Shown in pieces: positions 47,160 to 55,306 of a stretch of DNA of 64,000 bases. The stretch spans positions 1,674,001-1,738,000 of the forward strand of contig MCFH01000002.1 of the NCBI GenBank assembly GCA_002104945.1. Direction: 5' to 3'. The translations under genes and the position numbers were made by a program. A model generated the notes under the pieces. The model was not told the origin of the DNA and made no database searches. It saw nothing but the letters and a program-made list of their open reading frames with translations. The stretch is from Piromyces finnis finn (lineage: Eukaryota > Fungi > Neocallimastigomycota). Position 1 is the first letter of the stretch, and each line of letters opens with the position of its first letter.

Positions 47160-50100
47160 TACAAGTAAATACACTTTATATTTCTGCTTTATTAGACATT
47201 TTACCCTACTTCGTTTCATGTCTTCTATTTTTTATTTCGAATATATTATTTTTTTTTAAAAAAGTTCATAATGAATTAATGAATTTCATATAATAATGAA
47301 TAATGTGAAAAAGAATCCTTACACACTTTTCCTAAATTGATAGGTTTAAACCTACAAAATGGACCTACAAAAAAATATAAAGCATTCATTAAAGTTTTTT
47401 TTTTTTGGAATGCGCCTATAAAATAAGGTTATTTTATTTTTTCTTTTCATTCCTACTCCATTTTTTTTACAATACAATTCTAATTTATTTTGATTTAATT
47501 GATCTGATTTAAAAAGGATTAATTAATATATTATTAATATATTAGTCATAATAACGAAAATTTTTATTTCTTTCCTCATTCATTTAAAAAAAAAAAGAAT
47601 TTTTAATATATATTGTAATATATTAATTATATTAATAATTACTATAGAATTATTTAAAAATATATTATTAGTAAATAAATTTTTTTTTTTGAAATGAAAT
47701 ATAATGAAATATAGCTTTCCTTTTAAAAGAAATAATAAGCATGTTATTCTTTATTATTATCACGATTAGTTGTGTCTAACGATTAAGCTTTGCTTGCTTC
47801 TAAAAGATTTTTATTATTAATCAATATTTTAGTATTCTATTTTTTATTTTAGTAAATAGCTTTTTTATCTATTACAAGGAAAATTATTATTTTTATTATT
47901 AACAAATTTTTAAACTTTCAACTTTTTTAAATAAATAAATGCTTTCATTACAAAAAATAGTATTTCCTAAAAAAAATATTTGTGCATTTCAAAGATCTTA
48001 ACACTATTAAAATAGATTTATATATAGTTGGTTATACTTGCATAATAATACAAGCTATTATAAAAGTTAGTACAAGATCTTTTACAAAATTTATTAATGT
48101 TAAGAATTAATAAAGGTTAGGAAAATTGAAATCAAGGTTAGGTTATACAATTTTAAAATATTAAAAAATTTTAATAATATATTTGAAAATAAAAAAAGGT
48201 AATTATACATTGATACACATTGATACAAGTATTTTATATTCTTTCATGTTTACAAACTCTAGATTTAAAATATATGTTTTATTGATCATTTATATAGTAT
48301 AGATAAAATAATATAATAAAATAATGTTATTTAATTTTGTAATATATATTTAGTAATTTTTTATTTTATCCAATATTAAATGATGTTTTTTTAACAAATA
48401 ATTTACTATAAAACACTTTTTTTTTCTTGAATACAAAGGTTAGACTTTATGAATATTTTTGGATTATTTATAAAGTTTATATTTATAGTAATAACTAATG
48501 ATTAAATGAAAGCAATGTAGTTTTAATTATCAATTTAATCGATACTTCAATGATATTAACTTTTTTTTTTTTAACTTATAATTGTAGTTAACATAACTAT
48601 TGTAGATTTAAAACATTTAAATTAATTAAAATACTTTCTAATAAAACTTTATTATTAGTCATGAAAAGATGAAAACATTATTAAATACAAGATGTAATGA
48701 ACCAACATACCTTTTTTTTTTTTTCCTATTTAAATTAAACATTTTATGTAATACAATTTGATACTACATAAACTTTGCTGTGTAACATTTAGGTTTTTTT
48801 TTTATATATAAATAAAAATATAAAAGAAAATAGATATTAAGTTTGAAGATGCAACGTTTTTTTTTTAATAAACGAAAAGGCAAAAAAATAAATCCTCTAA
48901 AGAACACATAAATTATAATTAAGAAACATATATCGTATGTTAAGGTATGGAAAAAAAAAATACAATTCTAGCTTAAAAATGAAACATAAATTTAATTAAA
49001 AAAAAAAAAAGTAGTTATTATTTTTTATTTCAAATTAAAAATTTGCAAACCATTCTATTATTAATTAATAAATAAAACAAATCTTTTTATAACAGAGAGA
49101 AATTAACAATAATTTATTGTAATTTTTAATCATAGAAGATTTGTGATTTTTACATTACCAAAAGATAGTTATTATATTATATATTACATATATTACATAA
49201 TTATTGCTATTTTTTTTTTTTATTTTATTTTACAAAATCACTTTGTTTTATCCAAACTGTTTTTAAACTTGCCTTTTTTTTATATTTTTTCTACTATTTT
49301 TCCAGAATAGTTTTAAAATTTTAATCATTAATAAAAATTAATGTTTAAGTAAAAGGTTAAATAATTTAATGTATACATTTATTTTTATCCAATAAAATTT
49401 AAAACAGTACATCGGATGAATCGAAAATGTAATATAAAAAAGTAAAATGAATTAAAATTTTAAATTTTTTTTTAAAATAATATTTATATTTTTTAGGTAT
49501 AAATGGATAAAAATAAAAATAAGTACATAAAATATAAATATAAATAAAATGTTAAATATAAACATAACTAATTATAAATCTATTAATAAATGAATTAATA
49601 AAATAGAATGATAATAAATTTATAGTATTTATTTATTTATTTATGAATAAAATAAATAGCCTATTTCTAATTATAACCTTTATAGTTTCTTTTATTTATA
49701 TATTAGTTGGGCATTTACCATATTCTATTATTTATTTAGTAATATATATTATATTTATTTAATTAATCTTTTAAATTCAAGGCTTTCAAATAGCAAATAA
49801 TACTAATTTATTTATCTATCTATTTATTAATTTATCTATTTATAAACGAATAGAGTCATTTATTTATATATTATTACAATTTATTTATTCATTTATTTAT
49901 TTTATTTGTGCATTGGAATTATTAACTTATTTATTTATATATTTATTATTCAATTTATTTAGTTATATATTACATTTATTTAATTAATTTGATGATCATT
50001 TATTTAATTAAGGGGTCATTCATTTATTTGCTTGTTATTATATATTGGCTAATTTATATACATTTTATTCTATCATAATATATTTATTTATTATATTAAT

Positions 50101-50906
50101 TAATTTAATTTAATTTTTTTATTTATTAATTAATTATCTATCTATTTATTTATTTATTTATATTTATAAAAAAATTTATAATTACTAAATTCATTATTAA
50201 TATTAGAAAAAAAAATGTTTAAAAATTAATAATACTTGTAATAATAACAATAATAAAATCCCTTTATGTATACTTTTAACAAACTATAAACAAACAGCAA
50301 CAACAACAAGAACAATAACAAAAAAAGTTGATATTCATATTGAAGAATTTTAACTTTTTTTTTTTTATTATTGTTATTTAAAAAAAATAATTTATGAAAG
50401 TTACAATTTTATACTAGCTTTTCAATTAATAGTTTTATTTAAAATAAAGCTTTTCAATTTCAATTTGTATATTCCCTTTTTTTTTTTTTTTTTATAGATA
50501 AATATAAAACATTGAAAACAATAATAAAAGCATTTTAATATTATTGAACATATAGAATAATTGTATTATAAACATTTAAAATTGATATTTATTAAAAATT
50601 ATTATATATTTAATTACATATATTATTAACACATCGTTATATATCAATACCATTTTATAGGTATGTAATTATATATATATATATATTTATTTGTTTAATA
50701 ATAAAATTAAATATTAATTATAAATTTATATCTTTTATATTTATTTACAATTATTTTTTCACTATATATTAAACTATATTTAAAATTAATATCAAAAAAA
50801 GTATATTCATTATATATCCAATTTATTGTTATAAACACAATCAATTTATTATTGCTATTATTATTATTATTATTTTTTTTTTTTCAATTTAATAATATAT
50901 ATAAAT

Positions 50907-52313
50907 ATGAGTGGAGGAATGAACATTAATAATCCAGAACAATTTTCTGTAGGTGTTTACGTTTGTAAGAGCGAGAATGAATTTGGTACGGATATACCTG
51001 GTCAAATTCAAATAGTTGAAAATTTTTGTGGAGTAAAAAGCTTACATATTGTTGACTATTATATTGATAGTAATAATGATGATAAAATAGAATTGTTAGA
51101 AAGAGCAGCAATAAAAAGATTAATAAATGATATCAGCGAAGATAAAATAAACATGATAATTGTTAAAGATCTCGATGCCCTCAGTACTGATTATAAAAAA
51201 GTAAAGAAAATAATTCCAATATTATTATCAAAACCAAATAGTAGATTTATTTCTATTGAAAATGAAATCATGATAGGTTCAAATTCTTTAAAGGAAATTA
51301 ACGATAAGATAAAAGCAAAAGTAAGAAGACGCAAGTATAGAATGGGTGGTCGTTTGAAACCAAATGTTATTTTAAAGAAAGTTTATAGTGCACCACATAC
51401 TGATAATGTTATATGTAGACCACCATTTGGATATTTACTGAAACCAGATAGTAAAAACGAATTTATTATTGATAGACCAGCTGCTGATATTGTAGTTGAA
51501 ATTTTTGCAAAGATTATTGAAGGTTATTCCTATCAAAAAATAGCAAATAGTTTTAATGAAAGAGGCATTCTGACAGTTTCACAATATGCTGAAAAAATGG
51601 GAAGAAATCCAAGAAAAATTAGTACTCAATGGAATACTTCTACAATATATCAAATTGCTACTAATGAAATATATTTAGGACATTTAGTTAAATCAAACTT
51701 TGGAAGACCAACTTACAAATCAAAAAATCAGAAAAAAACAGAAAAAGTAATTTACTATAATGCTCATGAACCTATTATTGATGAACAAACATTTAAAATG
51801 GCACAAAATATTACTCACGGAAGAACCAAAAGTACCACCCAAAAAGTTTTAAATACTAGAAGAGCTCCATTTGGATATGATACAGATGTCAGTAATAATA
51901 ATAAATTTGTTATTGATCCAGAAGCAGCTGCTGTAGTCAGAACTATATTTAATCGTATTATTCAAGGATTTTTCTATTATCAAATTGCTGATGAATTTAA
52001 TTCCAACGGTGTATTAACAATATCTCAATATGAAGATAAAAAAGGAAAGAAACAAAGAAAAATAAGTACAAAATGGAATACATCAACAATTTATAAATTA
52101 GTTAGAAATGAAGTCTACTTAGGACACCTTGTTAAGATAAAAAAAATTATTGATGATGTTGACGGATCTATAAAAAAGGAAAAAATAGTTATTCGTAATA
52201 CGCATGAACCTATCATATCAGAAGATGTTTTTAAACTTGTTCAAAAAATTATTCGCAATAAACATTCTACCAATGTATCAGAGGGTAGTGAAACGGAAAA
52301 ATCAGAAATGTAA
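50907..52313 (+). CDS. Large-serine-recombinase-derived protein (TnpX/TndX-like): degenerate catalytic domain plus two tandem recombinase DNA-binding domains
   Basis: The N-terminal resolvase-like domain reads GVYVCKS...GQIQIVENFC...IVDYYID...ERAAIKRLINDISEDKINMIIVKDLDALSTDY...SRFISIEN. Two repeats of the recombinase domain follow (PFGY...FIID..AA.VV.IF..II.G..Y.QIA..FN..G.LT.SQY...WNTSTIY....NE.YLGHLVK...N.HEPII.E..F...Q), at residues ~172-302 and ~320-449. Single intact 468-codon ORF. Confidence 0.9.
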   Translation: MSGGMNINNPEQFSVGVYVCKSENEFGTDIPGQIQIVENFCGVKSLHIVDYYIDSNNDDKIELLERAAIKRLINDISEDKINMIIVKDLDALSTDYKKVKKIIPILLSKPNSRFISIENEIMIGSNSLKEINDKIKAKVRRRKYRMGGRLKPNVILKKVYSAPHTDNVICRPPFGYLLKPDSKNEFIIDRPAADIVVEIFAKIIEGYSYQKIANSFNERGILTVSQYAEKMGRNPRKISTQWNTSTIYQIATNEIYLGHLVKSNFGRPTYKSKNQKKTEKVIYYNAHEPIIDEQTFKMAQNITHGRTKSTTQKVLNTRRAPFGYDTDVSNNNKFVIDPEAAAVVRTIFNRIIQGFFYYQIADEFNSNGVLTISQYEDKKGKKQRKISTKWNTSTIYKLVRNEVYLGHLVKIKKIIDDVDGSIKKEKIVIRNTHEPIISEDVFKLVQKIIRNKHSTNVSEGSETEKSEM

Positions 52314-52888
52314 TTTAATTTTTTTTTTTTTTTTTTAATTTATTATTATTATTATTTTTTTTTAAATTCAAATTTAAAGAAAGAGAAAATGAATGATATT
52401 AATCCTTTAAAATTACCTAATTTACCTATTATGAATCATATTTATTTCTATATTTTTAAAAATACTTTTTTTTTTTTTTTTTTTTCATATATTATATATA
52501 AAATTTTTATATATCAAGTCATTAAAAAGAAACTATAAAATAAAAAATTAAAAAAAAAAAAAAAAAAAAAAAAAGCATCATCATCAACATAATAATAATA
52601 ATAATACCATTTTTATCTTTTTTTTTTTTTTTTTTTTTTTTTTATTTTAATATTTTTATTATTATAATTAGTAAAACTATTTATTTTTCTTAAAAAACAT
52701 AAAGATTTTAAAAAGATAAATATAGCGTTTAACTTGTAATAATAAATAGTAACAATATATATATCATATTTCAATTTTGTAATATTAATAGTATTATCTA
52801 TTATTATTAAAACATACTATTATTGAAAAGTAGTTTAAAATACATAATAAATAAATAAAAATACTAATTAAAATCTTTTATATAGTAT

Positions 52889-52923
<35 letters not shown>

Positions 52924-53080
52924 ACCTTTTTCTATCATATTACTTGTTATTATTGACCATAATTAATAATCATAAAGTGTTTTTTTTTGTGTAATAATAA
53001 ATATAACAATAAACACAATAAGCATAATAACAAACATAAAACATAATAAACATAATAAACATAAACATAATAAATATAAA

Positions 53081-53085
<5 letters not shown>

Positions 53086-53150
<65 letters not shown>
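53086..53150. repeat. (AAT)n microsatellite
   Basis: About 20 perfect AAT units. Confidence 0.9.
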
Positions 53151-53154
<4 letters not shown>

Positions 53155-53920
53155 TTAATATTAATATTAAATATATTGCATAATTCCAAGTATTAAAATT
53201 ATGTGACGTATTAATGAAGTTTTAAAAAAAATTAACACATTAATATTCTATTGTATATAATGCAATTTCAATAATATTATTAATATTTTAAAATAAACCC
53301 AACTAAATAAATAGATTATTGATATCATGGATTATTATATTCTATTATCATTTTCACTAAAAGATTAAGGAACAAATTATAACAATTGAAATTTTTATTT
53401 TTTTTTTTTTTAAAATAAATACTATTTTAAAAGCAAATTGATTTTTTTTTTCAAGATTAAAGTTAAAGGATGATACTTAACTTACATAATGATATTAAAA
53501 GTAATAATAATTTCTTTTAAGAATATCCTTTTTTTTTTTTTTTTTTTTTTTTTTCTGGTAAATTTCAAAAATATATTTTAGTTTAAAAAAAAAAAACAAT
53601 ATATTTATCACTTATATATAAAATTTTTTATTTTTATTTTTTTTATAGGATAATTTAACATAAATTTATAGAAAGTATTTTGTAATTTAACAATTTTTCA
53701 ATTTTTTTAAATTATTTTTTTTTTTTTACCTGAATAAAAATTGTTATAAACTTTAATTAATTATTATAAATAAAAACTATAAAATTATAATGATTAAATA
53801 CTTTTCTATTATTGAACAAACATTTAAATAATTATTATCATCTATCTATCTATATATATATATAAATATACTTTTCCAAATAATCTTATTTTTAATTAAA
53901 AGTAATAAATATGAACATTA

Positions 53921-55306
53921 TTACTTCAATAAAGTGAATGTAATGGATAAACTTAAAATGATAAATATTATTAAATTTAGTGGTTTTGAAATTGGATATG
54001 AACCGTCGTCAATTTCATAATTTGGTAATACTTTTTCATTTGTAATAATATTTGTGTCATTACCTTTGATAATGTTATTGCTATTGCTGCTTATTTCATC
54101 CTTATTATTATTATTATTATCAACTTTATTCACGTTTTCATTGTCTTTACTGTTAACATCATCCTTATTATTATTATCAACTTTATTCACGCTTTCATTG
54201 TCTTTACCGTTAACATCATCCTTATTATTAACACTGATATCATTTTTTGAATTGGTATTATTATTAGTACTGGTATCAGTATTTGAATTGGTATTGTTAT
54301 TAGCACTAGTAGTTTCATTCTTAATAGTGCTACTATTACTAATATTAATAACATTTTTAATATTTTCATTTTTTTCTATTTTATCATTATCTTTGTCATT
54401 GTTATTTGTATCCTTATTTGGTTTTGAGGAGGAAGAAGTACTATTAGTTTCTTCTGTTTTTTCATTTTTATTATAAGATTGTCCAGAAACATACATATGA
54501 TCTTTTTCTCCAAGACATTCAGCAACTGTAACAAAACGATATCCTTTTTCTTTCATACCACTCTTTTCAATAATCCATGGTGCAATTTCATGAACTGTAT
54601 AGTCTTGTGAATCATGCATAAGAATAAGATAACTATCTTTTTCTTTGGCAAATTCTTCTTTTAAAAATTTTATTGAATCTTCTACTCTTTTTTCTGCAGA
54701 ACCAGAACTTTCAAGATCCCAATCATTCGTATCAGTGTCCCATTGAATAAGACGATAGTTCCATTTATCAAGATTATTTTGACAATTTTCATCGCATTCT
54801 CCTTTTGGTGCACGGAAGTAGTATGGACGGTCACCCGTAACTTTTTCAATAAAATCATCCATATCCGTAAGGGATTTTTTAAATTCATTTGTATTACTTG
54901 ATATATTATGACCCCATGTATGGGAAGCAATTTGTAAACCATTATCATGTGCTTTTTTCATTGCATTTTGGAATTCTTCTGTTTCATAAGCAAAAGGATA
55001 GTGAAATTCAGCAACATGAAAGAAAGTTACTTTTGCATCTGTTTGGTCTACAATATAATCAACCAATTCTTTAGTATATTTATATGGACCATCATCAAAC
55101 TAAAATTTTATATAAAATTATTATTATATTATTAGAGGGATTACTTATTTATTTATTTATTATTATATATATATATTTTAAATTATATGGTGTAAATAGC
55201 TTACTGTTAATGCTATTGTTTTTTTTTCTTTACAAGAATAAATAATTTCAGCTTTAACTATATTTGAAATAGTTGCAATTAATGGAATGAAATTTATGAA
55301 CTTCAT
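53921..55306 (-). CDS. Secreted, probably GPI-anchored CE4/NodB polysaccharide (chitin) deacetylase, 2 exons, 426 aa
   Basis: Exon 1 55306-55205 encodes the signal peptide and ends ...KTIALT; exon 2 55099-53921 begins FDDGPY. All five CE4 motifs are present: TFDDGP, SHTWGH, RAPKG, DTNDW and LMHD. An N/S/T/D-rich stalk and a hydrophobic C-terminal tail (LIIFIILSLSITFTLLK) follow. Confidence 0.92.

Follow-up and report, generated by a model that had tools for sequence, protein, structure and literature searches.

A catalytically degenerate large serine recombinase with two tandem recombinase domains in anaerobic gut fungi, probably co-opted for DNA binding

The DNA analysed (the window) is a stretch of 64,000 nucleotides from the anaerobic gut fungus Piromyces finnis (Neocallimastigomycota; assembly GCA_002104945.1, contig MCFH01000002.1, positions 1,674,001 to 1,738,000 of the forward strand), and the subject of this work is a single gene within it, an uninterrupted open reading frame (ORF) at 50907-52313 on the plus strand that encodes a protein of 468 amino acids. 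The protein is a derivative of the large serine recombinases (LSRs) in which a Resolvase-type N-terminal domain with a destroyed active site is followed by two tandem copies of the recombinase domain (RD1 and RD2), and the gene is maintained under purifying selection across fungal lineages. Taken as a whole, it is probably best explained as a catalytically dead, horizontally acquired LSR that was co-opted as a DNA-binding protein in anaerobic gut fungi. The structural and evolutionary bases of this explanation are much more secure than the proposed DNA-binding role itself.

Architecture of the protein

The coding sequence (CDS; 468 codons plus stop) was judged to be complete and intron-less from the ORF list of the window, from full-length orthologs, and from a comparison with an ortholog-bearing contig (L001) in which similarity ended at the CDS borders. 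All features described below lie on the plus strand unless stated otherwise. Pfam placed a Resolvase domain (PF00239) at amino acids 18-120, scoring 29.0 bits where the cutoff is 23.3, and the Recombinase domain (PF07508) in two stretches, with 141.9 bits in total; NCBIfam gave sub-threshold similarity only, to the large serine recombinases CcrB, XisF, and CcrA.

The region from 51420 to 52253 (amino acids 172-449) had been interpreted in a preliminary description, which was made from the letters of the window alone, as two homologous units in tandem. This was borne out, and the peptides quoted in its support were present as written. A BLASTP comparison of amino acids 172-318 with amino acids 319-468 gave 64 identities over 135 positions (47%, E 2e-44), and the DNA of the two units aligned with a single 6-nt gap. 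RD1 (amino acids 172-306; 51420-51824) was delimited using PF07508 and our own hidden Markov model (HMM; envelope 172-308), together with its substitution pattern and model confidence, and RD2 (amino acids 320-454; 51864-52268) using PF07508, BLASTP, and its substitution pattern. Between them lies a basic, conserved linker (amino acids 307-319; 51825-51863), delimited from the ortholog alignment and model confidence, at the position of the linker between the RD and the zinc-ribbon domain (ZD) in canonical LSRs. Upstream of RD1 is a further conserved basic segment (amino acids 141-171; 51327-51419), beginning RRRKYRMGGRLKPNVILKK..., which is predicted to be disordered and includes a fungal-specific, conserved insertion of ~20 amino acids relative to bacterial LSRs (alignment A3).

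RD2 is followed by a short acidic C-terminal tail and the stop codon (52269-52313), with neither a zinc ribbon nor a coiled coil. The Pfam scan gave no match to PF13408 (Zn_ribbon_recom) in the 468-amino-acid protein at E values up to 1, in agreement with the earlier observation that CxxC pairs are lacking. A zinc ribbon is in fact impossible, because the only cysteines are C20, C41, and C170, with none after amino acid 170, and there is no room for a coiled coil because the protein stops 14 amino acids beyond RD2. Both modules are likewise missing from all fungal orthologs.

Catalytic site and helix E

The degenerate N-terminal domain (amino acids 12-127; 50940-51287) was assigned from Pfam, a match to TP901-1 integrase, and its substitution pattern; its fold is retained and its active site is lost. 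It was aligned with eight bacterial relatives using the invariant residues Y18, K87-D88-L89, and D95 as anchors. Motif A, which reads Y-x-R-L-S in the bacterial relatives, is reduced to Y18-V-C-K-S22 (50958-50972; alignments A3 and A4). Across six fungal lineages the arginine position of this motif is occupied by C/S/C/Y/C/Y and the nucleophile position by S/W/S/S/S/N (four serines, one tryptophan, and one asparagine); the serine is present in the window protein as Ser22, while tryptophan is found in P0002 and asparagine in P0006. Motif C is represented by VKDLDALSTDY (51162-51194) in place of the bacterial VKDLSRFGRDY, and neither arginine survives in any of the six lineages, the first being replaced by A, S, or C and the second by T or M. 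The alternative gapped register proposed by MAFFT rescued neither residue, and a HMMER pairwise comparison with the TP901-1 integrase catalytic domain (E 1e-4) displayed the same change from D-R-L-S-R to D-A-L-S-T. One conserved arginine, R66 of the ..RP motif, is retained and invariant.

The preliminary description had also suggested a trimmed helix-E region, and the alignment with eight bacterial LSRs agreed: 15-18 residues are gone from the stretch that runs from the domain's last strand (RFIS..EN) to K-I-K-A-K, corresponding to the N-terminal half of the helix (gap in alignment A3). The C-terminal half is left at amino acids 128-140 (51288-51326), where the structural model has a helix spanning 128-146. 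In serine recombinases it is the missing N-terminal half that provides the interface for dimer formation and subunit rotation. The features of the LSR enzyme family that remain are thus the Resolvase fold and the PF07508 recombinase domain; those that are missing are the catalytic serine and arginine set, a full-length helix E, and the zinc ribbon with its coiled coil. With its active site destroyed, as judged from these residues, the protein is very unlikely to recombine DNA.

Orthologs, ancestry, and selection

The protein identical to that of the window (P0001) was found on a 1.96-Mb contig with 18% GC. In the window itself GC content was 12-27% in 2-kb bins, and the CDS had 27.5% GC with a third-position value (GC3) of 0.14. 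A word search recovered five more fungal clusters of 469-473 amino acids, 78-84% identical over their full length and with the same Pfam content. Named orthologs identified by cluster look-up were KAL6628420.1 and KAL6601122.1 of Neocallimastix sp. 'constans', annotated as "recombinase-domain-containing protein", and a Joint Genome Institute (JGI) gene model of Pecoramyces ruminantium (Orpsp1_1). Named genomes had 1-2 near-identical copies, and clustering at 90% identity gave roughly one cluster for each lineage. One ortholog (84% identical) is carried by L001, a 7.7-kb metagenome contig with 19% GC, whose similarity to the window is confined to the CDS, no synteny being detectable outside it.

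Below the fungal clusters, identity dropped to ~28-30% with bacterial LSRs that covered only ~58-64% of the query, and every non-fungal match was bacterial or metagenomic. The nearest bacterial matches were gut-metagenome LSRs with a zinc ribbon, often with DUF4368, and the few named ones were proteins of Ruminococcus metagenome-assembled genomes (MAGs). By these matches, the fungal gene is of bacterial ancestry, best read as a horizontally acquired LSR. The literature search found no paper analysing serine recombinases in Neocallimastigomycota; the only trace was the Pfam name "Recombinase", listed without comment in Table S1 of Wang et al. 2019 as one of 40 domains found in anaerobic gut fungi but not in chytrids (PMC6712302), and a preprint on horizontal gene transfer (10.1101/487215) does not mention recombinase in its main text.

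Selection was estimated from a codon alignment of six lineages (the window, L001, L003, L004, L005, and L007) by the method of Nei and Gojobori. The ratio of non-synonymous to synonymous substitution rates (dN/dS), to be read as approximate, was 0.07-0.15 for the whole gene, 0.11-0.34 for the N-terminal Resolvase domain, 0.01-0.07 for RD1, and 0.03-0.11 for RD2. The contrast in the recombinase domains was unambiguous, with a pN of ~0.03-0.08 against a pS of ~0.5, and both domains and both linkers were almost invariant among orthologs, the N-terminal third being variable. On these estimates, the fungi maintain it as a host gene, with constraint strongest in the DNA-binding modules.

Predicted structure

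An AlphaFold2 model was generated on a 70-sequence alignment, with a mean predicted local distance difference test (pLDDT) score of 77 and a predicted template modelling score (pTM) of 0.37. It comprised an alpha/beta N-terminal domain, segments with pLDDT below 50 at 141-167 (the disordered basic segment) and at 307-317 (the inter-domain linker), and two recombinase domains with pLDDT mostly 80-94 (mostly 81-94 in RD1). RD1 and RD2 shared the same order of elements, namely two short strands, five helices, a beta hairpin, and a long helix. When the model was compared with the Protein Data Bank (PDB) using Foldseek, the top matches were the SPbeta, Bxb1, and phiC31 integrase complexes (E 1e-14 to 1e-10), and the N-terminal domain was matched by the TP901-1 catalytic domain (TMt 0.74-0.76). 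A profile of 30 RD units also matched the RD of SPbeta integrase (residues 172-297) with an E value of 5e-18.

In canonical Firmicutes LSRs (TnpX/TndX-like proteins and the integrases LI/A118, SPbeta, Bxb1, phiC31, and TP901-1), as in the fungal protein, a Resolvase fold leads through helix E into a PF07508 RD with a helix-turn-helix (HTH) core. The fungal protein differs from them in having no catalytic arginines in motifs A and C, a serine that is not conserved, and half of helix E; in carrying RD2 where the ZD and coiled coil would be; and in being encoded in a eukaryotic nuclear genome, where its gene is conserved as a host gene. In the structure of LI integrase bound to attP, the HTH core of the RD lies in the major groove, the linker from helix E to the RD and the 8-residue RD-ZD linker sit in the minor groove, and the RD and ZD together cover a 25-bp half-site (PMC3783163).

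Tandem recombinase domains outside fungi

A profile of the six fungal proteins was searched against 1.84 billion representatives and gave 7723 matches. The best non-fungal matches spanned both RDs, each in one stretch, and were P0121 (231 bits) and P0122 (204 bits). P0121 is a protein of 766 amino acids with a Resolvase domain and four Recombinase domains, and P0122 has 620 amino acids with a Resolvase domain and three Recombinase domains; neither has a zinc ribbon or a CxxC pair. P0319, like P0121, has 766 amino acids and four RDs without a zinc ribbon. All three resemble the fungal protein in joining a Resolvase domain to tandem RDs, which in them are separated by linkers of ~8-12 amino acids, with neither a cysteine-based zinc ribbon nor a coiled coil. 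Unlike the fungal protein, they retain the catalytic motifs (Y-C-R-L-S and DLSRLGRNY) and a full-length helix-E region, and their genes lie between canonical LSR genes on metagenome contigs, within arrays of serine recombinase genes. P0122 is encoded on L008 (L008:19-8153, ENA metagenome contig k141_1864404) within an array of four serine recombinase genes, the order being a DUF6870 gene followed by genes for proteins of 553 amino acids (canonical), 620, 821, and 546 amino acids (canonical), and P0121 has the same upstream neighbors.

A second arrangement, in which a Resolvase domain and two adjacent RDs are followed by a zinc ribbon, was found in P0130, P0217, P0345, and P0277. P0277 is a recombinase family protein of Clostridium innocuum (MCC2831824.1 and others), present on 86 contigs, and P0217 is GHU44414.1 of a Clostridia bacterium. 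As in the fungal protein, the second RD follows directly after the first; the four proteins differ from it in that the zinc ribbon and C-terminal region are kept, and they come from bacterial isolates or MAGs. Several further two-RD matches were fusions of two complete recombinases and were not counted as tandem RDs. No multi-RD form without a zinc ribbon was found among annotated phages and plasmids, where tblastn with P0122 returned canonical LSR-sized places only, of ~900-1000 nt, with the three P0122 RDs piled up on each. A feature search of the ESM Atlas returned only generic Resolvase+Recombinase clusters of ~280-330 amino acids and was uninformative on domain number.

A maximum-likelihood tree was calculated for 81 RD units. 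Fungal RD1 was monophyletic (100/99), as was fungal RD2 (100/100), and the two were sisters (99/92) in a clade that fell inside the canonical-LSR part of the tree. The units of P0121 and P0122 formed a separate clade (100/100), so that their duplication appears to be independent of the fungal one; the two P0217 units were sisters (100/97), and the P0277 and P0130 units were placed outside the fungal clade. Because the tree separates these clades, RD duplication appears to be recurrent and the fungal duplication an event of its own, which the branching order places later than the separation from every bacterial relative sampled and earlier than the divergence of the sampled fungi. The positions of P0277/P0130 and P0217 are consistent with duplications separate from the fungal event.

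The architecture had been presented in the preliminary description as novel. With the database search in place, the doubled RD combined with ZD loss stands as a property of the fungal proteins, and the claim that it is unique as such is not supported, given P0121, P0122, and P0319 on the one hand and P0277, P0217, and P0130 on the other. By their domain content, tandem RDs, and even multi-RD proteins with no zinc ribbon, do occur outside fungi on bacterial-looking gut-metagenome contigs; the same description had held that a wide spread of the architecture in active bacterial elements would speak against its claim, and this applies in part, the arrangement being present with intact motifs but rare. 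These multi-RD gut-metagenome proteins are probably bacterial, and by motif they appear to be catalytically intact. No published description was found of serine recombinases with 3-4 RDs and no zinc ribbon.

Proposed function and alternative explanations

Domesticated proteins derived from recombinases or transposases in eukaryotes typically have lost catalysis, have kept their DNA-binding domains, and are encoded by a single host gene under purifying selection. To our knowledge, those known so far go back to DDE transposases or tyrosine recombinases. The fungal gene shows the hallmark of exaptation, in that catalytic residues have been lost and purifying selection acts across species, and the literature search turned up no eukaryotic large serine recombinase described as domesticated.

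The proposed history begins with a TnpX/TndX-like LSR of gut Clostridia, which would have been acquired horizontally. In the ancestor of the sampled Neocallimastigomycota, the module of zinc ribbon and coiled coil and half of helix E would have been lost and the RD duplicated in tandem, and selection would since then have retained a protein that does not recombine DNA. In the fungal nucleus this protein may bind DNA in a sequence-specific manner: each RD would place its HTH core into the major groove, and the two basic linkers, upstream of RD1 and between RD1 and RD2, would lie in the minor groove, by analogy with LI integrase. RD2, reached through the basic linker of ~13 amino acids, would take the place of the ZD in the LSR half-site complex and serve as a second DNA-reading module, so that one chain could read a bipartite site of ~20-25 bp, or about two helical turns. 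The degenerate N-terminal domain is probably an oligomerization or protein-contact module, and its dimerization might bring four RDs into one complex.

Several details of the preliminary description are affected by this proposal. Its suggestion of a candidate transcription or chromatin factor holds in part: since the two RDs are the most conserved parts of a dead recombinase derivative, a co-opted DNA-binding role, possibly in transcription or chromatin, is the best reading of the sequences, and the accompanying claim of a new architecture as such is not supported. A direct-repeat target site is possible and is not implied; RD1 and RD2 have different residues at positions where each set is invariant, so the two half-motifs need not be identical. 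The site had been supposed to be read by a monomer, and the retained N-terminal fold could equally mediate dimerization. The basic segment RRRKYRMGGRLKPNVILKK, named earlier as a candidate nuclear localization signal, could be one, or could be the counterpart of the minor-groove linker between helix E and the RD.

The DNA-binding explanation has several limits. Whole-gene dS was 0.7-1.1 and per-region dS reached ~1.5, which is near saturation, and AT content and codon bias are extreme, which makes the dN/dS values approximate. At the pTM obtained, the relative placement of the domains in the model is unreliable. The N-terminal domain is also under purifying selection, and its role is accounted for only vaguely. 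DNA binding and nuclear location are predicted, and the signs of expression are indirect: three studies contributed four sequencing runs of this organism, labelled as RNA by a guess, that contained 72-80% of the sampled words, relatives occurred at low share in faecal metatranscriptomes, and orthologs were found on transcript-sized contigs of 1.4-1.9 kb.

Among the alternatives, a conserved dead protein whose selected role is something other than sequence-specific DNA binding, such as scaffolding between proteins, RNA binding, or action as a decoy for, or inhibitor of, incoming bacterial or phage serine recombinases or their DNA, is unlikely but the most serious. The demonstrated selection specifies no ligand, and the fungi live among Clostridia rich in LSR elements; yet the constraint is greatest in exactly the two RDs, the RD is the DNA-binding module in solved LSR complexes (PMC3783163), the RD profile matches that of SPbeta integrase, and the linkers are basic and conserved, as DNA contacts would be. 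It is rather improbable that the fungi received the tandem, zinc-ribbon-less layout in finished form from a bacterial donor resembling P0121 and P0122. These two proteins are the top non-fungal matches to the fungal profile, across both RDs, and also lack a zinc ribbon, but a higher score is expected when two query domains find two target domains, and the P0121/P0122 clade was rejected as the source by the tree, in which its units stand apart from the sister pair of fungal RD1 and RD2. An unsampled bacterial donor that already carried the fungal duplication is possible.

A still-active site-specific recombinase or transposase, belonging to a fungal mobile element or to programmed rearrangement and using a non-canonical active site, is highly improbable. 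The Resolvase fold is kept under purifying selection, a serine stands at the nucleophile position here and in three other lineages, and R66 is invariant; against this, the nucleophile is tryptophan in P0002 and asparagine in P0006, none of the six lineages has kept any of the other three catalytic arginines, half of helix E, the interface for rotation and dimerization, is deleted, no flanking repeats were found beyond low-complexity DNA, and at 90% identity each lineage contributes about one cluster. Bacterial contamination, or a neutral insertion of recent date now in decay, would suit a domain family that is otherwise bacterial or phage, and has a negligible probability: contamination was ruled out by the position of the gene within an AT-rich contig of 1.96 Mb, by its fungal-like GC3, and by the fungal orthologs, the best bacterial match being only ~30% identical, and a decaying pseudogene by the intact orthologs in several fungal genera and a dN/dS of ~0.1.

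Implications

A domesticated, catalytically dead LSR in a eukaryote appears to be undescribed, and so does the mode of action of LSR relatives with 3-4 RDs and neither zinc ribbon nor coiled coil. The tandem RD duplication itself is not unique to fungi and is shared by some bacterial recombinases. If the favored explanation, co-option for specific DNA binding, is true, serine recombinases could be recruited as eukaryotic regulators in the way that DDE transposases have been; a non-metabolic, information-processing gene would join the bacterial genes that shaped anaerobic gut fungi; and the protein would be a compact, zinc-free, two-module DNA reader akin to the integrases used in genome engineering. 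A broader proposal, which is tentative and in our estimate falls somewhat short of an even chance, is that the fungal proteins constitute a new, lineage-wide class of eukaryotic sequence-specific DNA-binding regulator with a tandem-RD reading head, possibly dimerized through the dead catalytic domain, that they are the first domesticated eukaryotic LSRs, and that RD-RD reading evolved independently in some gut-metagenome recombinases. Tandem RDs with intact motifs and no zinc ribbon raise the question of how sites are recognized and how directionality is controlled without a coiled coil.

Flanking sequences and neighboring genes

A repeat search of 49205-54500 found no mobile-element termini, only A/T low-complexity repeat families, and among the ORFs listed around the gene, whose translations were not scanned against Pfam, none stood out as a further recombinase. 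The 3' flank (52311-53170) contains long poly-T/poly-A runs and an (ATA)n microsatellite. A neighboring ORF of 381 amino acids on the minus strand (53921-55066) resembles NodB-type polysaccharide deacetylases and has an HTWGH-type motif, judged from its translation alone; it carries a long, low-complexity tail rich in Asn, Asp, and Lys with 57-nt and 36-nt tandem repeats. On L001, a CotH-family gene (L001:4284-5480, minus strand) lies ~2.5 kb downstream of the 84% ortholog and is not adjacent to the gene in the window; CotH is also among the domains unique to anaerobic gut fungi reported by Wang et al. 2019 (PMC6712302).

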